64,000 nt of DNA from Syncephalis fuscata S228. Taxonomy: Eukaryota > Fungi > Zoopagomycota. A program made the translations under genes and the position numbers. A model generated the notes under the pieces. That model was not told the DNA's origin, made no database searches, and saw only the letters and a list, made by a program, of their open reading frames with translations. Each line of letters begins with the position of its first letter. Within the stretch, counting starts at the first letter, position 1. Location of the stretch: assembly GCA_025786725.1 (NCBI GenBank), contig JAHLTZ010000006.1, forward strand, positions 682,001 through 746,000, given 5' to 3'. Below, one piece after another: positions 1-63,825 of the stretch.

Positions 1-169
1 CTCCGTATTTATTTTGTCATTTTGATCAATCAAATCAATGATATTCCACTGTCAATTGCATTCAATAATATTCTAACATTTATCAAACAAAAACATGATT
101 AATTATACTGACTAGATCTTTAATAATACATTTAACAAAATGTATTAACAATTATATTTATATGATCCA

Positions 170-1637
170 TTAGGATCGATAGTCAGCATTAATGCTGACA
201 TAATCATGCGAAAAATCGCATGTCCACATGGTGGCTTCCTCTTGGCCAAGACCAAGATCGACGTGGATTTCGATATCCTCGTTTTTAAGTAGCTGTGCAG
301 CAAAAAATTCATCGACTGGCACTGGCTCACCCTTGCTTAGCACAGCAAGTGGCTGTTCAGGCTGAGCGGTGGCCTTAAACGTAACACTGACTCGTTCTGG
401 TTTAATGGTTGTTTCGCTGCCTGGAGCATAGCCAATGGCACAAAGTACACGTCCCCAGTTAGCATCTTGGCCATAAAGTGCCGTTTTTACTAAAGCACTT
501 GTGCAAATAGTCGAGGCGATTGTCTTTGCTTGGTTAAAATCTTGCGCATTCTATTGATAATAATACCAAGTATCGTATTAGTTGCATTGCTATGATAATT
601 TAATATACACCTGCCTTTACGCTAACGGTAACAAATTTTGTAGCACCTTCACCATCACGGACAACGAGCTGAGCAAGTTCAGCAGAGAACTCGGTCAATT
701 GGTCACGGAATGCAAGGTAGTCGGCGCTATCGGGTGTAATTACTGCTTGTCGATCACCATTACCGGTCCATGCCGCGCCATTGGCCAGTAGAGCAACTGT
801 ATCATTAGTGCTAGTATCGCCATCGATTGTAATTGCGTTAAAGGATCGATCAACAGCATGGCTAAGTGCTTTTTGTAGCGCATCAGCTCTAACTGCAGCA
901 TCAGTACAAACAAAGCTTAGCATGGTCGCCATATTTGGATGAATCATGCCGGCACCTTTGGCCATACCAGCCATACGATACTCTTTTCCAGACGGTAGTT
1001 GATAAACACGACTACGCAACTTAGGAAAAGTATCAGTGGTACAAATACCCCGGGCTGCTGTTAACCAATTTGTATGACTGTCACCAAGGTGATTTTGATA
1101 AACCTCAGGCACACCAGTACGAATGCATTGCATTGGTAATGGCTGACCAATAACACCAGTCGACATGACGAGTGTTGCATCGGTTGACGGTGCGTTTGAC
1201 GATAATAGCTCGTTAACCGATGCTGCCATTGCTGCCGCGTCCTTATCGCCTTGCGTGCCAGTAACCGCGTTGGCACAGCCAGCGTTAATTAAAATGGCGC
1301 GTATGGGCCGGCCACTTGGGTCGGCACGGTGACGAGCCAAAAGGGCACGGTCGAATTGCACGGGTGCAGCGGGAAATGCATTACGCGTAAATACCGCGGC
1401 TCCTGTGCATGGCTGGTCCGCCACCAGTAATGTAAGGTCGAGTCCAGACTTTTTTATACCGCAATGAACTGCGCCTAGTCGATAGCCAAGTGGATACGTA
1501 CCGTCAGTTGGTATAAAACGGTCTTTTGACGCTGATGTTGTGTAGTGTCGGCTATAGGCGGCACGATAGGTGCTTCTTGGCGCCAAACGAGAAACAGCTG
1601 CAGCGGTAGCTTGGAACCAAGACTTAGTCAACAGCAT
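170..1637 (-). CDS. ARG7: Mitochondrial ornithine acetyltransferase / ArgJ family bifunctional protein (2 exons: 1637-615, 550-170)
   Basis: ArgJ motifs [53 protein letters not shown]. Exon 2 has [15 protein letters not shown] and ends [18 protein letters not shown]. The intron 614-551 is GC-AG. The N-terminus looks like a mitochondrial presequence. Confidence 0.95.
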
Positions 1638-2218
1638 AGTAGAAAAAGGTAACTAACTAGAGTAAAAACGAAAAAAATGATTTGTATTTAATATTGGTCC
1701 TGTTTTCTGGATGTCGCCGTAATTGTATTATAGACGTTTACAATTGAAGCTTATACAAATTTGATGTAAATCTTTATCAAGAGAAGGAAAGATAATATCT
1801 TTTTAGAGATGTAAAAATAATAATCTCAAAAAAAAAGATCAATCACATGGAGAAAGATGAATGATCATTTGGCTTTTAAATTATACTAATAGCTAATAAA
1901 TTGCTCAATAAAAATTAACTGCTGAATGAAAATCATAAATAATTTGCAACAGTTGATCAAATATAGTTAAAGTAAGATAATATGTTTATTACTACAAATT
2001 TGAATAGCTGAATAAACACAACTAAATTCGGTCTTGTTGGTAATATAGTAGCAAGATTGTTTAAAAGTTGAATAGGCTGGAGCATTGGCTGGACTTGGTA
2101 TATAAGTGAACTAACTTCTGTTGCTTGAGAGTTTTGCTTTTTGCCAAATATATACCTAGCTGTATTAAACTAGCATTCGATCAAACTACCAATACTAATG
2201 TCCTGGAAGCGCCGGTTA

Positions 2219-3133
2219 TTCTATTTCTAAAAAATATACAACACATGCCATATAATTAGTGTATAGGCTAGAATTATAAAATCCCACTTACAAACTATTA
2301 TTATGAGTTATTGTACACAGTGTACAAAGTGTAATCAGTGTATTGTTACTAAATATATAATTTTACTTACGACCTATTGATAAAATTGTTAAATCCACAC
2401 GGTTTATGGCATATGATTAGCGTATAAATGATTGATATATAATGTCAGTTACTGCCTAATAATACAAGTTATCAAATGTACACGGTTTATAGCGTATGTT
2501 TAGCGTGTGTGTATGATTAATTATACGTATTTTTACTTACTAACTATTAATATTGAATTGTTGATATACATTACACAACATTCAATTAGCGTACTATTAC
2601 TAAACATATAATGTTACTTACCAACTATTGATATTAATTTGTTAAGTACATGCGATGCACAAAATATGCTAGTGCATTGTTAGATAACATAAAATGCTAC
2701 TTACGTCCTATTGATACAAATTATTAGAAGCACAAAGTAAATGGTGCTGATTTAATACACAATTACTTGTTATACGATTCTATTTACCTTCTATTAGTGT
2801 CAAATTAGTAAGCACATAAATATATTATGCAATCAGCGTGTGTGTTTATTCAAATAAAATAGCACTTACGACCTATCAATAAAAGTTGTTAAAGCACGGT
2901 GCATGTAATATGAAATCAGCGTATTGTTAATTAATATACACTATTACTTACGACCTAATTCATACATCCCATTAAACAAACACAATATATGACATATGAT
3001 CAGTGTATAGCCAGTTAACTCATTTTAGTTGGAACATACCACGACGAACTAAAATTGGCTTAGCATCCACTGTGACCATATTGGCTACAAAAGCAATGGC
3101 TACAATGCAGGCAATGGCGATAGAAAGCTTCAT
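2219..3133 (-). CDS. Micro-exon-encoded secreted prepropeptide, paralog A (exon 1 3133-3040, nine 3-nt exons, terminal exon from ~2220): MKLSIAIACIVAIAFVANMVTVDAKPILVRR-GRQGLVSSL*
   Basis: Signal-peptide exon followed by a GTATGT donor, then ten 71-85-nt GT..TAG introns. The intervening triplets are GTC(2952-54), GTC(2870-72), AAG(2788-90), GAC(2705-07), TTG(2622-24), TTA(2541-43), GCA(2453-55), GTC(2371-73), TTT(2292-94). Exon 1 and the terminal exon are homologous to the gene at 58.8-63.8 kb. Confidence 0.75.
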
Positions 3134-4741
3134 GGTGATATAGATTTGTTAAAACAAAAAGTAAAATAAAAAATGCAGATGCTTGCGATGAAGTAGATAG
3201 TAACAGTGGTTTGTGCAGAAAGTAAAATGCAATGATAATACCATTAGTTATTTGCACGCATTTTGTGAACTATTTAAGTCTACGGTTGTGCTGGAATACC
3301 AAAGGTATGTATTTTGTAGAATATACCACTGAAATGCAATGCCAATTAATTAAACAAATTTACGTCATGACTTAAAGCACGCGTATATAGATAGATTAAT
3401 GCATCATAGTATGCGATTTAGTTCTTTGTTTTAACTTTGCACTTACAAGAATACTGCAACAATGGCAATTACCTGGTGCATATTTAATTTGAACATGCAT
3501 GTCAACCTTTGGTTGTATTTTTTGCACAATTCAGCAAAGCCATAACAAAGAACATGCTAGATTTATACGAACAATGATAATGGTGCCTTTATGTCTTTGT
3601 TCTCACTTTTTTGAAAAAACTGCAAAGGCTAATACTTGCTTTTACTTCAAAAAAATGCTACACCACAGCAAATTTATACATCAGAATACTATTTCTGCAT
3701 AGAATGGCAGAATCTTGTGCATAAACCATTGTAGTTTCTTGAAATACAGCAATATACTAATTTAATAATGTAGTTATTGTTATAAAAATGCATAATTACA
3801 CATGTCATTATATGCGTTGTATCATTGTTGACATATCGCGTAACAGAACTTTTGATAGCAATGTTTGTATGTAAGTCACTAGTTTATCAAAAAATTGTTT
3901 AGTCGTTCGCTTATTATGCGATGAACTACATCCATAACTATTAAATATATACTATGCTGTTTACATATAATAGAAAATAACAACTATAATGCTGCAATGC
4001 AATAAAATCATTGCAAACTGCTGCAAAAATACACTGGTTGCAATAATTGCTAGTAAAAACGTCTATTATGAATATATGACAAGTAAATACTTGTTATTTG
4101 TAAACATAAGAACGTTTTATTAATTAAATGATTGCTATTACTTTTTAACGCATATTCATTGAACGTTTACCGTTTGATGACACTGAACGCACTCTTTCTA
4201 TACTGCTGCATATTATCATAGCATTAACTCAATGATTTTGCGTTTAAATTTACAAGCCAACACTCTGTTGGTATTCAAAGTACTAGAAACGGAAATACGT
4301 TATTTTTGCTACAATCATATTATTATGCATAAGATATTACATTTTACAATAATTATATGCGTTAAAAATAACAAATAATGCAATACAATTTATCTATTGC
4401 ATGCTAAATACAGTATTGAATAAAAAAAAACAGAATGCAGAATTGCAAAATATAAACAAATAGTCTATTTGCTAAACTATACTTTATTATTAAAAGCGGC
4501 GATTACTATTAACTGCATGATTATCAACACATATAGGCATTACCGATACTTTTATCGGTGGGTGCCAATAGCTACATGGCAGACATTAGCATGCCGTATA
4601 CCTACACGTCCTACCGGTGTGATGATTACATTTGATGCACACACCATTATGTCAATAAAGCAGACATACACATAAATAACACATCGTTATAAAATGCGTA
4701 ATCAATGATTTATCTGTGCATACCACTGTACTATTGTACAC

Positions 4742-4947
4742 TTCATTATGCCACATAATCTTGGAGTGTCGGCACATATAAATTACGTGTTTTTGAAAAA
4801 TCGTGAGAGTGCTACAAATAGAAATGGCAATATAATCGTGAGAAATGACATTTTCAAACACGTTTTGGTTGCTAGCACTTTCTCATGATTATCAAAAGCA
4901 CGTAATTTATATGTGCCGACGCTCCAAGATTATGTGGTCATAATGAA
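4742..4947. repeat. Imperfect inverted repeat / fold-back (MITE-like)
   Basis: ~73-bp arms: ttcattatgccacataatcttggagtgtcggcacatataaattacgtg... pairs with ...cacgtaatttatatgtgccgacgctccaagattatgtggtcataatgaa. The loop is ~58 bp. Confidence 0.8.
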
Positions 4948-5979
4948 TGATATTACGTATCTCTAGTTATATTATTAATTGAACTACAAATCGGTAAGAA
5001 TTGCCTGATTTATCCAAAAAAGCAGTAATGGTTTTTATTTGCCATTTTGCCATTATAACCGCACACAATACCAATCGAAAGTGTATTAAATATTTAACTA
5101 ACTAATTGCAGTAAACAGTCGCTTGTATGTTGGCAACATTGATTGATGTAGCAATAACTGGCCATTGCTAGTTAGTGTACATACATTACCATCCATTATT
5201 AGCGTTGATCATGTGTCCGTGTTGTCTGGCTAGTACACTAATAGTATAGCTGGCCTATTAAGCTATATTAGTAGCATATGAATAGCATTGAGTATTGATA
5301 CTATTTAATATATAATGGCTATTGGCACGCATTTTGATCACAATCATTGCATGGCACTACTATTATTTTGTGATTATAACAATCGTATTAATCGTTGGTA
5401 TTGTGTGCGCACTAACATATATTTCACGTTGTTGTAATTGCTCAACTGCATGTTTGCTAGTACTGCATCCATATGTGCATATTGCTGACGTATATTGACA
5501 CTGATCGCCATCCATGCCAGTTGAATGTTATCGACAGGTCTGCAACTATAACAAGCAGTGGTTGCTGTTTTTATATCCGCTAACAAACATGATCATTGCT
5601 GTTGCTTTCGTGTATCATTGGATGTATGTATATATGGATGTCAACTGTTTAGTATGATATTTATATTGTAATGTTGATTTCCATCATGGTACTATGCCTA
5701 CCTTGTTTACAAATAATATCAAATACAGCCACTTTCTTATAGCTACTCTAACATCTAGCATATTTAAATTGTAACTTTATTATAAAAGCAATACTAATAG
5801 AATCTTCAGTAGTTTGGTATGTCATTATCACATTATGATTTATTATTTTATTTGGCTGTCTTATTTGTGTTAGTTTATTGCATTACTATTAAATAATTTA
5901 ATGTAATTTGGTAGCTAAATAATTAAATTTGATGCTAACAGCTCAATTGAGCTACACATCTACTTTATTGAACATAGAT

Positions 5980-8900
5980 CCGGGTGATGAATGACACCAG
6001 TCATTAACTACTTATTATTATATATTTACAATTTAGTATGCATATATACTCCATCCACCAATAGCATTACCACGGTATCCCATACTATCATATATTATTT
6101 TAGCATATATTGGCTACATTATATTTGTTACAAATTTCGAGTATATCTAGTTTGATGAACAAAAATAAAAATAACATTGAATAGAGGGAAGGCTGGACGA
6201 TTATAAAATGATATATAGAATGAAAAATGTATGGTGAGAAGACATATAAAATAATATTAAAGTTATATTGCATATAACGCATTGAGTGGAGTGTGTTAGT
6301 GTATATAATGAATTGGCAATGAAAGACATAAATAAAATAACTAAATGAATCATTGGTGTTGCTGTTTAAATAAATCGTGTACATTTGTGTAATATGTAAT
6401 TATAATCTAGCTATTTAAAAAATAATAAACTTTTAAACAAATATATGGACAATAGTAATAAAACCTTTATTATAATATCACGTTATCTTAATAAATACAC
6501 CACACACCTCCTTATTCAAGCCATTATATATAATTATTATTCTCTCTTTACAACCATAGCCACTTTATTTACTCAACCAATGCACTTAATAAATATGCAA
6601 TACCAATACCAATTGACACCTGACTTGATAAAAAATCAAATAAATATATATTTTCCTCCATTTGGAAAACTATGCCAAGTAATAGCATCAACAACAATGT
6701 ATCATACTACTGTTGATACTTGTGCCAATGAAGGCAATCATTGGTATTGTAAATCGCATACAAAAACGATGGCCTACAATGACAAATGCAGTTTAGATAT
6801 ACTTGTTGATCCGGCACCAATGCTTGAATAGCTATAATAAAAGTGCATTAGTATTGTTTAGTAGTAATAAAATAATTATGTCTAGCTGATTGTTGTTTGT
6901 ATATAAGTTATAAAATACATTTAAGATAATTCTTTTGCTGTTTGGATATTGTCATTATTTGTTATACAATACTATAAATAAATGTAAAAGTTGTTAAAAG
7001 TTGCTAATCATGATGATCAGCTAATATAGAAACTATGCGTCCACCTGGAATACTGGCAATACTACGACTTGGGCGTAAGTAACAGTTGTCAGAAGCACAT
7101 AGCCCTATACTAGCTTCCTATCAAGATGACAATACGGTTTATTAAACGATATGATATGCAGTAATAAACATCACTGGACTACTGGTTCACCCAATTGTAG
7201 CTAGTGTGTAAAGCTAAGTGTATAAACACCACTGCATACTACGATTAAAACGGATATTGCCAAATGCTGCTGCATTATTAAATGGTCACAGCATAACCAT
7301 AGTGGTATATCATCTAGCATACCGCGCTGTTGCATGCGAGCCCGAGGGGTCGTTACATTTTTCCGTGACTGGCGACACGGCGTTTAAATGATATGATACT
7401 AATGAAGTTATACTGTGATTCATTTAACAACACCTACAAGTAAACAGTATAGATATACGTTCGCCTATTACAGGCGTTCACATACCACATCCGGTCTAGT
7501 GTGTTATGGTAGTATTCAGCAAGTTAAATTCTACCCCACACCTCCAGCGCGCGCTCAATGCAAATAGGCACTAGTATATGGCCACCCATTACAGGCGCAC
7601 CGCCTTAACATGAGGTGAAGCACAGCAAAACTACCCAACTTGCTAAATAATGTTGCAGCCACTCCCAATTTCCACATGCATCCGCACTACACTAGTATAC
7701 AACCGCCTATTACAGGCAACTGTATAATACCGATCCAGTATAATATAATAGTCTGCAATATTATATTACACACACAATATAGCCCACAAGCAAAAACACA
7801 GTATCTCACGATCAACCAGCAAGGGGATCATATGCCGCCGGATGTAGCTACTAAACCTGATGGTATACCATTAACAAGCGGTTTATAGCACATTAACAAC
7901 TAGAAACAGAAGAAGGCGAGATAACGAGCAAAAGTAAGCTCAACACAACCTTATAAACTTACTTTAAAATATATCTACCAATTAGAATGGATAATATTGG
8001 TAAATAGTATGTGGCAACTGTTCATTGGCGTATTGCAACTGACTGAAACCTTCTAATGCCAGATACCATCTTATCAGTAAATTGGATTATAATCCCTTCC
8101 TTATTTCCATATTTGCTCACTTTTTGCCTTCCATTTGCCGGTCATTTCCGCGCATAATCAGCATATCTATACTGGCTAGTTGAATCAATTGGCCAATGCA
8201 ACTGAAACATAGCCAAATGCGACCATTCTTAATCAGTTGTACCACTATAATAGCGGTTCTTTCCGATGCTATCAATATTGTCAGGGCTTAGCAGGTATTT
8301 TCACTTTTTCTCAAGTATTCTTGCCATTCGCACACAATTAAATCAGTCGATCCACACAATTTATTACTGTATTAGTTAAATAAAATGACTACTTTTCTTT
8401 AGAAATATGGTCTATAACATAATTCACCGATTGAGTTTCAATGCTACTAAATAGAATAAAATACACGCTGTTCATATTACATTACAAAGTCCGTTAAAGT
8501 TATGAAGTAAAAACAGGAATAAACACGTAACCATATCGACTGCAAAGGCCAACATGAAAACCAGTATGATGTAGCACATGCATGCTTAGCCAAGTGACTA
8601 TATAAAATACCAATATGCACAATAGTTTGCTATACACTTAGGACTGAGCTATAGCATCAGTAAGCAGAACATACTACAAGTATAATGCTATTAATTGTAC
8701 AATAAAGTATTATTGTTTTATTACCATCAATACTGACTGATATTGTAATATTGTGTGTTTTTAAATTTATGAATGTCGCAATAAACAGAATCTTTTGCTT
8801 TACTTTTTGTTACCACTTCATTTTCAACGCTTACTTTTACTTTGAAGCTTTATTCATTGAACATCCGTACTTAACATCGTTATCACCATGACATCTTTGA

Positions 8901-58882: not shown

Positions 58883-61800
58883 TTCTATTAATATTAAATT
58901 ATTTATACACATGGTATATAGCATGTGATTAGTGAGTAATCAATTAATATACAATACGACTTACAGCCTATTAGTATTAAATAATTGGTACAATCAGCAA
59001 ATAGCATAGTTAATGTATAGTTAGTTAATATACAATATCACTTACAGCCTATTAATATTAAATAATTGGTACAATCAGCAAATGGCATGGTTAATGTATA
59101 ATCAGTTAATATACAATATCACTTACGATCTATTAATATTAAATAATTGGTACAATCAGCAAATAGCATAGTTAATGTATAGTCAGTTAATACATAATAT
59201 AACTTACAGCCTATTAGTATTAAATAATTGGTACAATCAGCAAATAGTATAGTTAATGTATAGTCCGTTAATATGCAATATAACTTACGTTCTATTAATA
59301 TTAAATAATTGGTACAATCAATAAATAGCATGGTTAATGTATAGTCAGTTAATATATAATATAACTTACGCCCTATTAATATTAAATAATTGGTACAATC
59401 AGCAAATAGCATAGTTAGTGTATAGTTAATTAATACAAAAATACAACTTACCCGCTATTAATATTAAATAATTGGTACAAGCAGTAAATGGCGCGATTAA
59501 TGTATAGTTAATTAACATACAATACAACTTACGCTCTATTGATATTAAATAGTTGGTACAATCAGCAAATAGTATAGTTAATGTATAGTCCGTTAATATG
59601 CAATACACCTTACGAGCTATTAATATTAAATAATTGGTACAATCAGCAAATAGCATAGTTAATGTATAGTCAGTTAATACACAATATCACTTACCATCTA
59701 TTAATATTAAACAGTTGGTACAATCAGCGAATAGCATGGTTAATGTATAGTCCGTTAATATGCAATACAACTTACGTTCTATTAATATTAAATAATTGGT
59801 ACAATCAGCAAATAGCGTAGTTAATGTATAGTCCGTTAATATGCAATACAACTTACCCCCTATTAATATTAAACAGTTGGTACAATCAGTGCATAGTATA
59901 GTCAATGTATAATCAGTTAATATGCAATACAACTTACGAGCTATTAATATTAAATAATTGGTACAATCAGCAAATAGCGTAGTTAATGTATAGTCCGTTA
60001 ATATGCAATACAACTTACCCCTATTAATATTAAACAGTTGGTACAATCAGTGCATAGTATAGTCAATGTATAATCAGTTAATATACAATACAACTTACAT
60101 CCTATTAATATTAAATAATTGGTACAATCAGCAAATAGCGTAGTTAATGTATAGTCCGTTAATATGCAATACAACTTACTGCCTATTAATATTAAATAGT
60201 TGGTACAATCAGCAAATAGCGTAGTTAATGTATAGTCCGTTAATATGCAATACGACTTACACTCTATTAATATTAGATAATCAGTACAATCAGCAAATAG
60301 CATAGTTAATGTATAATCAGTTAATACACAATATAAAGGTGGACGTTGCTAGCCCAGTAGGATAAGGCAGCGTCTTTTGAGCTGTAAGGCTCCGGGTTTA
60401 AACTTTAGTTCAAATCAATCCTTAAGTAAACCCCCTCCCAGTTTTTTAGTTAACAAAATTGCAAACCAGAACCCAATAAGTAGGTCCGGAAACAAGACCT
60501 TGGCCAGAATAGTCAAGGAAAAATAATTGGGATTAACTTTAAAAAATAGTGCTACACAGCACTATTCAAAAGAAGATGGTCCCGCGTGGAATCTACATGA
60601 ACCAGATTTGCGCAAAAACGTGGCAGTCCATTTGTTAATTTAGAAAAAGCCCAAAATAGTGGGGAGCAGCGCAAACTAAAATTATGCGCAGCGGGCGCTC
60701 ATAATCCCTTCTAATAAATAAATAAATAATACACAATGCAACTTACGTTCTATTAATATTAAACAGTTGGTACAATCAATAAATAGCATGGTTAATGTAT
60801 AGCCAGTTAATACACAATACTACTTACCGTCTATTAATATTAAATAATCAGTACAATCAGCAAATAGCATAGTTAATGTATAGTCAGTTAATACATAATA
60901 TAACTTACAGACTATTAATATTAAATAATTGGTACAATCAATAAATAGCATGGTTAATGCATAGTCAGTTAATACACAATACCACTTACCGTCTATTAAT
61001 ATTAAATAAATGGTACAATTAATAAATAGCATAGTTAATGTATGTCAGTTAATACATAATATAGCTTACTGCCTATTAATATTAAATAATTGGTACAATC
61101 AGCAAATAGCATAGTTAATGTATAGTCAGTTAATACATAATATAACTTACAATCTATTAATATTAAATAATTGGTACAATCAGCAAATAGCATAGTTAAT
61201 GTATAGTCAGTTAATACACAATATCACTTACCGTCTATTAATATTAGATAATCAGTACAATCAGCAAATAGCATAGTTAATGTATAGTCAGTTAATACAC
61301 AATATCACTTACCGTCTATTAATATTAGATAATCAGTACAATCAGCAAATAGCATAGTTAATGTATAGTTAGTTAATATACAATACGACTTACCACCTAT
61401 TGATATTAAACAATTGGTAAAATTAGTGCATAATATAGTCAATGTATAGTTATTTAATATACAATATCACTTACAATCTATTAATATTAATAATTGGTAC
61501 AATCAGCAAATGGCATGGTTAATGTATAGTCAGTTACTATACAATATCACTTACGATCTATTAATATTAAACAGTTGGTACAATCAGTAAATGGCATAGT
61601 TGATGTATAGTTAGTTAATACATAATATAACTTACCGGCTATTAACATTAAACAATTGGTACAATCAGCAAATAGTATAGTTAATGTATAGTCAATTAAT
61701 ATACAATATCACTTACTCCCTATTAATATTAAATAATTGGTACAATCAATAAATAGCATGGTTAATGTATAGTCAGTTAATATACAATATCACTTACTCC

Positions 61801-63825
61801 CTATTAACATTAAAAAATTGGTACAATCAGCAAATAGCATGGTTGATATAAAGCCAGTTAATAAATAATACAACTTACAGCCTATTGATATTAAGTTATT
61901 GATACACACAATACACGATATATAATTAGTCAGTGGTCAGTTAATATATGATGCTACAGCATTTCCCGAGCTAAAGGCTCCAAGTCCAAACCTCAGTTTG
62001 AATCAATCCTTAAGTGGAAATCCCCCCAGTTTTTTTAGTTAACAAATTGCAAACCAAAACCAAAACCAAACAAGTAGATCCGGAAACAAGACCTTGGCCA
62101 GAATAGTCGAGGAAAACCAATTGGGGCCAACTTCAAAAAATAGTGATGTGTAGCATCATTCAAAAGAAGATGGCCCCGCGTGAAATTTATATAGGTGTAT
62201 TTTACGCAAAAACGTGGCAGTCCATTCGTTAATTTGGAAAACTCCAAATATAGTGGAGAGCAGCGCAAATTAGCAAAATTATGCGCAGTGGGGCTCACAA
62301 GCTCTTCGAAATAAAATATAATGCTACTTACATACTGTTATAATATTAATTTGATACAAACAGTACATGGATATAATCAGCAAGTAGTTAGTTCATATAC
62401 AATACAACTTACTAGCTAGTAATATTAAATTATTAATGCACACGCAATACATGGATGTAATTAGTGTATAGTCAGTTAATATGGAATATTACTTGCCATC
62501 TATTCCATTAAGTTATTGATACACATAGTGCACGATATATGATTAATTTATAAATTATCAACATATAATACAACTTACAGCCTATTAATATTAAGTTATT
62601 GATATACACAGCACATAATATATAATTAGCCAATGCTTAATTGATATACAATATAACTTACATTCTATTAATATTGAGTTTTTGATAAACATGATGCATA
62701 ACATGTGATTAGTGCATAATCAACTAATATACAACACAACCTACTTTCCGCTAATATTAAGTTGTTGATAAATACAGTACATAATATATAATTAGTATAT
62801 ATTTAGTTAATATATAATATCATCGCCAACCAAAAGAAATAAGGAATGGCGGAGATGACGAATGATTGAGGAAAAGAGATGCTGTTAGAAAACAAACGAT
62901 TAATATCAGTAGAAAAAGAAAAAGATGTACAGATTCCAAGTCAAAAAATAACAGAAAACAGAGACAAAAGTTATATGACGATGGAAGACGTGGGAATAAC
63001 AGTTACAAAAAGCAACCAAACAAAAGAGGATGGTGCAGGCAAGTATAGGCGCGTCTGCAATCAGCAGTCCAAGAATTAAAGTAATGGGCACAGCGCAGAG
63101 TAAATGGAATCAGACACAAAAATACAGCCAGAAACAATGATAGTATTAAGAAAAACAAAGAAAATAAAATGAGATAATGACAATCATGTAGGCAATAATA
63201 GCCAATAAGAACAAGTATAATGATTTCAGATAGCCAGCTCATACCGGACGCAGTAGAAAGAGGCGGAAATGCGAAGCAGAGACTGAAAAGTGAAAAAAAC
63301 GAGTATGACAGAAAGGAAAGCCATGACGAAATTGAAACAGCAATAGCCAGTAATTAGGTATCCTCAAGTGTTAAAGAAGTTCTGTAACAAAGGCCAAAGC
63401 CAGTAGAGCCATAGGCAAATAATACATCCAAGATTATATCAAATGGAGCTTTGGCAGAGCGTCAGTTAATATAACGGCCTTAGTGTGAAATTAATAGAAC
63501 TCAGCTTCACGCAAAAACGTGGCGGTCTACTTAGTTTTAAAAACGCTGTACATTTAGCAGAAACGGAGAAGCAATGCAAATTCTCAATTATATGTAATAG
63601 GGATTCACAAGCTTTTCAAAATAAAAATAAAATAAATACAATACCACTTACTATCTATTATAATTATTGTTTAGAAATACTATTAGTAAATAAAATGCTA
63701 TGCCATATTTATTGATATTGCAACATACCACCACGACGAACTAAGGCTGGTTTAGCATCAACCATGGATGTACTAGCTACAAGCGCAACGGCAATGGTGC
63801 AAACGACGGCAATGGAAAGCTTCAT
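58883..63825 (-). CDS. Micro-exon-encoded secreted Cys-rich prepropeptide, paralog B (exon 1 63825-63729, 40 micro-exons, non-coding terminal exon from 58810): MKLSIAVVCTIAVALVASTSMVDAKPALVRRG-DTEKCYAICWRTDHCDDDCNVYEQCRWAREHAQPGQRYRC*
   Basis: Manual splicing at every YAG|NNN|GT (one GC donor) gives an open phase-1 frame with 6 Cys. The stop comes directly after the last Cys, in the last micro-exon. This needs the 2-nt exon at 60019-60020 (GG) to be GGG. Confidence 0.8.
60337..60726 (+). mobile_element. Putative tRNA-derived SINE, apparently full length
   Basis: A-box-like TAGCCCAGTAGG (60350-61), B-box-like GGTTTAAAC (60395-403) and a (TAAA)n tail. Imperfect ~15-bp TSD TAATACACAATATAA / TAATACACAATGCAA. 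Confidence 0.7.
61958..62315 (+). mobile_element. 5'-truncated second copy of the same SINE-like element
   Basis: Colinear with 60370-60720 (aatcaatccttaagt, tccggaaacaagaccttggccagaatagtc, cgcaaaaacgtggcagtccatt). TSD ATATGATGCTAC / ATATAATGCTAC. Confidence 0.75.
62823..63632 (+). mobile_element. Decayed non-LTR (LINE-like) 3' fragment sharing its tail with the SINE
   Basis: Purine-rich broken-ORF sequence. The last ~130 bp (cgcaaaaacgtggc...tcacaagct...aaaataaaaataaaataaa) match the SINE 3' end. Possible TSD ata(t/c)aata(t/c)ca. No RT motif was recognised. Confidence 0.5.

Follow-up and report, generated by a model that had tools for sequence, protein, structure and literature searches.

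Can a gene be assembled from exons that are only three nucleotides (nt) long? This question is raised by a locus in a 64,000-nt stretch of the genome of Syncephalis fuscata S228 (contig JAHLTZ010000006.1, positions 682,001 to 746,000), hereafter referred to as the window, in whose coordinates all positions are given unless another contig or locus is named. On the minus strand, a short exon whose coding part begins at position 3133 is followed by a regular series of intron-like segments, separated from one another by single trinucleotides. This species, a zoopagalean fungus, parasitises other fungi. Here we report that the nine consecutive 3-nt exons of this locus form a genuine gene, which is expressed as RNA and spliced exactly as predicted from the genomic sequence. 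We consider it very probable that this is a functional micro-exon gene, spliced to an mRNA for a prepropeptide of 40 amino acids (aa), and that it is a member of a secreted-peptide family of at least 150 loci.

A coding stretch of 94 nt starts with the ATG at 3133, ends at 3040 in phase 1 and is translated as MKLSIAIACIVAIAFVANMVTVDAKPILVRR, with one G remaining. The resulting 31-aa leader starts with MK, continues with a 15-residue hydrophobic core and VDA, and then contains KP before ending with the dibasic pair RR. A GTATGT donor lies directly behind this exon, starting at 3039. Scanning of the downstream sequence with the regular expression TAG-NNN-GTAA revealed nine sites with spacings of 79-84 nt, while the same scan of the plus strand produced no comparable run. 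The nine micro-exons (all on the minus strand) are, in order, GTC (2954-2952), GTC (2872-2870), AAG (2790-2788), GAC (2707-2705), TTG (2624-2622), TTA (2543-2541), GCA (2455-2453), GTC (2373-2371) and TTT (2294-2292). Each of them is preceded by TAG and is followed by GTAAGT (seven cases), GTAAAT (one) or GTAACT (one), so the claim of the first-pass annotation that every spacer measures 3 nt between intact TAG and GTAA signals is confirmed by the coordinates.

The complete minus-strand gene comprises a TATA-like box, TTAAATAG (3270..3277), lying roughly 50 nt upstream of the point at which the RNA contig described below starts, exon 1 (3040..3222, with a 5' untranslated region (UTR) at 3222-3134 and the coding part at 3133-3040), intron 1 (2955..3039; 85 nt, GTATGT...TTAG), the micro-exon array (2292..2954), intron 10 (2227..2291; 65 nt, GTAAGT...TTTTTTAG) and a terminal exon (2075..2226). 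Within the array there are eight homologous introns of 76-85 nt, at 2951-2873, 2869-2791, 2787-2708, 2704-2625, 2621-2544, 2540-2456, 2452-2374 and 2370-2295. The lengths of introns 1 to 10 are 85, 79, 79, 80, 80, 78, 85, 79, 76 and 65 nt (786 nt in total). The TAA stop codon is split, its T being at 2292 and its AA at 2226-2225. The remainder of the terminal exon constitutes a 3'UTR that has been kept across the family (AACCGG...AGGACATTAGTATTGGTAGT) and is homologous to those of other loci, including a second array at 58.8-63.8 kb of the window (locus A), whose leader lies at 63.8 kb. When joined in silico, the exons encode a 40-aa product ending in RRGRQGLVSSL. In the other frames of both strands, between 1985 and 3300, there was nothing beyond chance open reading frames of 42-65 aa.

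Direct evidence that this structure is spliced was obtained from one public sequencing run, which contains part of the locus (0.20 of the sampled words matching, approximately the share expected from the exons alone). RNA contigs of this run were aligned to positions 1-6000 of the window. One contig of 385 nt (depth 55.9) covers 3222-3038, i.e. exon 1, and 2226-2075, the terminal exon, with 0 mismatches in 337 nt, and the two aligned blocks are bridged by 25 other letters. In reverse complement, and together with two bases absorbed by the aligner, this bridge is identical to the nine micro-exons, joined in order, at 26 of 27 bases. All ten introns are absent from the contig and the junctions are at the predicted bases, the acceptor of intron 10 coinciding with the joint at 2226. 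A chance origin of the bridge is excluded, since a 25-letter string reproduces nine dispersed trinucleotides. The sole difference between genome and contig is at position 2622 (minus strand), where a G in the genome corresponds to an A in the RNA; this turns micro-exon 5 (TTG) into TTA and replaces Val by Ile in the product. We read it as a strain or allele difference, and a G-to-A change is not in the direction of A-to-I editing. The peptide end proposed in the first-pass annotation, GRQGLVSSL followed by a stop, agrees with the joined reading, the RNA carrying I in place of V, and the spliced string that it predicted is present in the contig with one base different.

These observations bear on the simplest objection, namely that no splicing takes place, the region being a degenerate minisatellite with splice-like motifs, and the joined contig an assembly artefact or a processed DNA copy. 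The region does resemble repeat DNA, the type of the run has only been guessed to be RNA, and its data are contigs rather than reads. However, a 25-letter bridge that equals nine dispersed trinucleotides, between flanks without a single mismatch, is nothing an assembler could make up. The leader of this locus has a single 100% copy in the assembly, which makes a processed DNA copy unlikely. Moreover, the neighbouring gene ArgJ, whose reading frame (600-1637) is 100% identical to a protein of S. fuscata, is represented in the same run by a contig lacking a 64-nt GT..AG intron, from which it follows that the run is RNA, and reversed control patterns gave 0 matches in the genome. This objection has therefore already been largely refuted, and we give it almost no credence. 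Non-genic satellite DNA was likewise ruled out, by the RNA splicing, the open frame and a codon-position bias described below.

About 80 further contigs of the run match the leader region with 90-99% identity, which shows that many paralogues are transcribed, the contig depth being unable to rank the genes of the family by expression. A separate feature of the aligned segment is a 1259-nt contig of very high word depth, which aligns with gaps over 440 nt of the minus strand at 5267-5701; no convincing reading frame was found there, and it could represent a repeat or a non-coding RNA.

What, then, maintains the splice sites of such an array? Introns 2-9 are homologous but diverged, with a mean pairwise identity of 0.63 (approximately 37% divergence), and their lengths have drifted. 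Despite this, none of the 20 splice sites and none of the 3-nt spacings has been lost, and the survival of each GT, each AG and each spacing in diverged introns supports the view, expressed in the first-pass annotation, that splicing is under selection. That annotation was also right about the divergence of the introns, while the lower limit of the length range it gave (71-85 nt) is too high, as the last intron measures 65 nt. In the alignment of the introns of this locus, GT..AG is invariant. The donor and AATAG are conserved, as is a box reading ACRCTRAT, some 40-45 nt before the 3' splice site.

The same features were found in the family at large, for which our statistics cover the window and 60 leader loci (L001-L060), for most of which the sequence used extends just 1.5 kb past the leader. 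Among 154 array introns from 11 loci, GT and AG are invariant and an exact CTRAY, which resembles a branch point, is present in 97. First introns are of the GTATGT type family-wide, and array introns of the GTAAGT type. The ordinary intron of ArgJ shows the same style of splice signals as the array introns, and these signals are all that the two have in common. Considering their GT..AG termini, the CTRAY-like box and the exact removal from RNA, the introns are ordinary U2-type introns.

It might be argued that the excised introns are themselves the functional products, as in host genes of small nucleolar RNAs (SNORD115/116), and that the exons are mere leftovers. Host genes with tandem introns are known, and the introns of the array share conserved internal boxes. 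Locus A has 25 units, all precisely 81 nt long, and within the unit no position varies more than the three of the exon (diversity 0.65-0.76, against an intron mean of 0.12); this is the reverse of the usual conservation of exons and introns. Nevertheless, we regard this explanation as very improbable: an Rfam scan of the whole window matched no family, a consensus fold of the ten introns at the locus contained no conserved pairs, and C/D or H/ACA boxes are not evident, the conserved boxes coinciding with splice signals. It also leaves unexplained the open frame, the codon-position bias and the homology of the payloads (the coding parts behind the leader) to peptides encoded in one exon.

The gene is expressed as a minus-strand transcript of about 1.15 kb, from which ten U2-type introns (65-85 nt) are removed to give an mRNA of about 360 nt, and to this extent the explanation has been demonstrated by RNA. 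Three nucleotides leave no room for the factors of a 3' splice site together with those of the next 5' splice site, so the introns are probably recognised singly, through intron definition, and taken out in succession. With every splicing event, the next micro-exon would become the end of an exon of normal size. Such a stepwise removal would resemble recursive splicing, with the distinction that 3 nt are left behind at each step.

The notion that the payload is translated is supported by several features of the spliced sequences. In ten spliced loci, the 155 post-leader codons contain 0 stops in the frame of the leader, compared with 12 in frame +2, and when exon order was shuffled 0 stops were obtained in only 0.5% of trials (locus A and two others, L033 and L060, were omitted from this count, since the splicer mis-joins at introns with inserted elements). 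At position 2 of the micro-exons, which in phase 1 corresponds to codon position 3, T is present in 57%, while T is rare at codon position 1; this bias is a coding signature. The spliced payloads include a 34-aa product with seven cysteines and a proline-rich one (PRPPRPAPPRP), and some of them resemble paralogues encoded in one exon (..PAKCEEC..C and ..PAKCKEC..C; AVAPLAKR and AVEPLAKR). Pfam searches with seven of the one-exon paralogues gave no match above noise.

From these data a route to a mature peptide can be proposed for the locus at 3133. The signal-like leader would be cut after VDA, and a Kex2-type protease would cleave the short pro-piece KPILVRR behind its dibasic RR, with the result that the 9-aa peptide GRQGL(V/I)SSL would be released outside the cell from the 40-aa prepropeptide. 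The RR pair is invariant at leader positions 30-31, as would be expected of a putative dibasic cleavage site before the mature peptide. The role of the peptide is the weakest step of this explanation; it is likely to be a secreted effector, an antimicrobial peptide or a signal in the parasitism of fungi.

Several points weigh against this interpretation. The mature product would be a linear 9-aa peptide without a recognisable fold or family, and the signal peptide was called by eye, on the hydrophobic core and the VDA motif. Support for the product exists at the RNA level, the peptide itself being predicted, and it comes from one run only, which is kept as contigs and whose RNA type is the guess of a tool; contigs give no view of splicing order, isoforms or expression level. 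The only base at which genome and RNA differ is a micro-exon base. Finally, there is a weak second joint, from 2266 to 3033 (depth 6, side 20), with non-canonical ends; it links the start of intron 1 with the last intron and could stem from the alignment itself or from a minor isoform.

Another reading accepts the splicing as described and holds that the payload is functionless: the units would be a selfish or neutral tandem repeat, expanding and contracting in the tolerant tail of a family of secreted-peptide genes, and the 9-aa product decaying or incidental. It is true that this payload is very short, is unrelated to those of other members and lacks the cysteines typical of many paralogues, that the introns of the locus are old and diverged, and that the single difference between RNA and genome is nonsynonymous. 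The depth of the contig of this locus is also unremarkable next to that of some very deep leader-matching contigs, although, as stated above, depth does not rank the genes. Against this, 20 splice sites and all 3-nt spacings have survived approximately 37% intron divergence and changes in intron length, the frame is open up to a conserved TAA, and a transcript is present. We therefore judge a functionless payload to be unlikely, and retain the reading of a functional gene for a secreted peptide.

Is this gene a singular case? In the 29.4-Mb assembly of S. fuscata, the pattern of two consecutive units was matched at least 2756 times and that of three units 1787 times, far more than chance would give (0 for the reversed control patterns), and at least 150 scored matches to the leader were obtained out of 294 candidates, so other loci with a leader and an array exist in large numbers, with units in the thousands. 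The alignment of 19 leaders showed a mean column identity of 83%, with M1, K2, S4, I5, C9, A14, V22, A24, P26 and R30-R31 invariant. In 26 aligned upstream regions of the family, TTAAATAG, GATATCATCATCACACTCTAC and TTTTAACAAATCAATATCACCATG are conserved; these regions share the TATA-like box and a conserved 5'UTR, and the block is a putative promoter followed by the 5'UTR. The relationship with locus A that had been proposed in the first-pass annotation is borne out: the two leaders are paralogous and share the 5' context aacaaatc.atatcaccATG as well as the phase-1 GTATGT donor, and their 3' exons are approximately 66% identical over about 210 nt. This 3' exon is common to the family, and its opening few bases supply an in-frame TAA to all complete models (the locus at 3133, L051, L055 and the C1 loci).

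All unit copies examined sit in arrays behind the leader of this family. The converse does not apply, as only about half of the sampled leaders precede arrays, while others lead, without leaving their exon, into small peptides, cysteine-rich or otherwise. Most micro-exons of the family are 3 nt long, some measuring 6, 9 or 15 nt. The idea of a constant prepro leader with a payload variable in length and sequence is thus upheld by the loci spliced in silico, with the refinement that the leader also heads one-exon peptides and that micro-exons are not always 3 nt. The overall picture is that of a family of at least 150 loci, in which promoter, leader, first intron and 3' exon are constant and the payload is variable.

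Near-identical copies of whole micro-exon genes were also observed as segmental duplicates, tens of kb apart. Some are inverted (C1:476-478 kb and C1:531-534 kb; C1:575 kb and C1:610 kb) and others direct (C2:226-228 kb and C2:245-248 kb).

How did the arrays arise? The array at 2292-2954 is old and diverged, and it escaped detection by Tandem Repeats Finder. The pattern of locus A, with uniform introns and variable exons, fits units that were recently duplicated or homogenised while their exons diversified; young introns inserted into an older coding sequence would fit it also. Another observation concerns a pair of close paralogues, one with micro-exons (L053, minus strand, leader 1501-1593) and one with a single exon (L043:1501-1833), which contain the same ..RR-AV.PLAKR coding DNA (25 of 28 bases), the reading being interrupted in L053 by introns after 1, 4 and 7 bases. 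Since this coding DNA is shared with and without introns, the family has gained or lost introns that lie 3 nt apart. The gain or loss of intron-plus-codon units, suggested in the first-pass annotation, is therefore a plausible mechanism, to which locus A lends support, but in view of the L053/L043 pair it is not the only route.

The array introns also serve as insertion sites. An element of about 370 nt resembling a short interspersed nuclear element (SINE), with an (AAAT)n tail, was found in antisense orientation in array introns, always just after GTAAGTnnnATTGTATATT. In the window it occurs at 60340-60710 (where inspection by eye shows a short target-site duplication), 61955-62320 and 63460-63630, and it was also identified at L040, L052, L053, L059 and L060. 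ARAGORN and Rfam found no transfer RNA (tRNA) head in these inserts, and ARAGORN detected no tRNA in the window.

A broader hypothesis, which we put forward tentatively and hold to be somewhat less probable than its opposite, is that the intron plus 3-nt exon unit acts as a movable codon cassette, one codon per exon being a general and overlooked mode of coding for secreted peptides in fungi. Arrays would be resized and homogenised by unequal exchange while their exons diversify, exon skipping would possibly add variants, and the spliceosome would handle thousands of 3-nt exons routinely. Unequal exchange combined with diversifying exon bases would permit an unusually fast evolution of peptide length and sequence.

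The family has remained largely invisible in public annotation. When 1.84 billion protein representatives were searched with the leader profile, 19 proteins were identified, all from S. fuscata, and a word-based search agreed with this result; about 19 annotated leader proteins thus stand against at least 150 leader loci. The locus at 3133 has no gene model among the leader protein matches. In the deposited models of locus A (P0123) and of the L059 locus (P0124), the leader has been kept and joined to unrelated readings, and the arrays have been skipped. Because public gene models skip the arrays, catalogues of effectors and peptides for such fungi are incomplete. As judged from these sequence searches, the family is specific to S. 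fuscata, very large and largely unannotated.

Arrays of this type may nevertheless occur in other organisms. A scan of metagenomes with a three-donor unit pattern yielded 120 loci. Most of these are simple repeats of the (GTAA)n type from termite-gut samples and were discarded, and one (L117, JAESGN010000035.1) is a bacterial array of clustered regularly interspaced short palindromic repeats (CRISPR), with 33 units, a spacer that is always GGA and a repeat containing TAGGGAGTAAGT. At least 12 environmental contigs have the sequence pattern of genuine arrays, with GTAAGT..TAG introns of 70-83 nt and variable 3-nt spacers: L138, L150, L115, L125 and L156 (Ga0210392), L135, L174, L111 and L067 (Ga0307512/4), and L148, L155 and L146. 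In three of them (L150, L115 and, by eye, L155) the array follows an unrelated signal-like exon in phase 0, and the joined reading stays open. The array of L135 resides on a 519-kb contig, where the adjoining gene encodes an ascomycete-type HeLo/DUF7580 protein. On the tentative codon-cassette hypothesis, the presence of arrays behind unrelated signal-like exons, and of one array in an ascomycete-like setting, would point to either independent origins or an ancient spread.

Internal exons of this size are thought to strain splice-site recognition and, to our knowledge, 3-nt exons are known only as rare single curiosities. Searches of open-access papers and bioRxiv yielded no account of arrays in which 3-nt exons follow one another, nor of any micro-exon gene from Syncephalis or Zoopagomycota, an absence that is no proof of novelty. 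Nine such exons joined in a row and without error, and thousands in the genome, offer a natural system for the study of adjacent splice sites 3 bases apart. Furthermore, a large expressed family of predicted secreted peptides in a mycoparasite has been invisible to annotation, as its arrays resemble repeat DNA and escape gene finders, and the metagenome matches make it probable that the catalogues of other fungi are incomplete too. The variable exons of locus A and the L053/L043 pair also bear on the origin of introns and of new coding sequence.

Individual features of the system have parallels in well-known gene families. In conotoxins and amphibian skin peptides, a conserved signal and pro region precedes a hypervariable mature peptide located in one ordinary exon. 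The S. fuscata family similarly has a conserved prepro leader, mature peptides that vary in length, cysteine pattern and sequence, and a predicted dibasic release site, but many of its members spell the peptide one codon per exon. Fungal precursors processed by Kex2 (of the alpha-factor type, or KEP repeat proteins) usually contain tandem peptide repeats in one exon. A short pro-region and a dibasic site (RR, or KR in some paralogues, as in ..PLAKR) are predicted for the S. fuscata family as well, and its leader has a signal-like core where those precursors have a signal peptide, while the payload of the S. fuscata locus is split into 3-nt exons. Recursive splicing, known from Drosophila and vertebrates, subdivides very long introns at ratchet points (AG|GTAAGT) with exons of zero length, so that nothing stays behind in the mRNA. 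Both arrangements place a 3' splice site beside a 5' splice site that is regenerated, implying removal step by step, but in the arrays 3 coding nt would be deposited at each step and the introns measure only about 80 nt.

In fungi, introner-like elements form sets of near-identical short introns, and new introns are also created by the tandem duplication of segments that carry splice signals (PMC4974935, PMC4457414). Families of similar short introns within one genome are a shared feature; however, introner-like elements occur one at a time in genes unrelated to each other, while the S. fuscata copies examined lie head to tail in one gene family, with one-codon spacing. The micro-exon genes (MEGs) of Schistosoma have a first exon encoding a signal peptide, symmetric micro-exons and a last exon with the stop codon and 3'UTR; their exons measure 3-81 bp and their introns are long (up to 5 kb) and unrelated (PMC10526429, PMC5825161). 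Like MEGs, the S. fuscata array genes form a lineage-specific, fast-evolving family in a parasite, have their coding sequence mostly in consecutive symmetric micro-exons between leader and terminal exons, and are predicted to encode secreted products. Unlike MEGs, they reside in a fungus, their internal exons are nearly all exactly 3 nt, and their introns are short (65-85 nt), mutually homologous and tandemly duplicated; there is also no sequence homology between the two, the leader profile matching only S. fuscata proteins. The schistosome micro-exon gene is therefore the closest known kind, and the locus described here is an extreme variant of the same idea.

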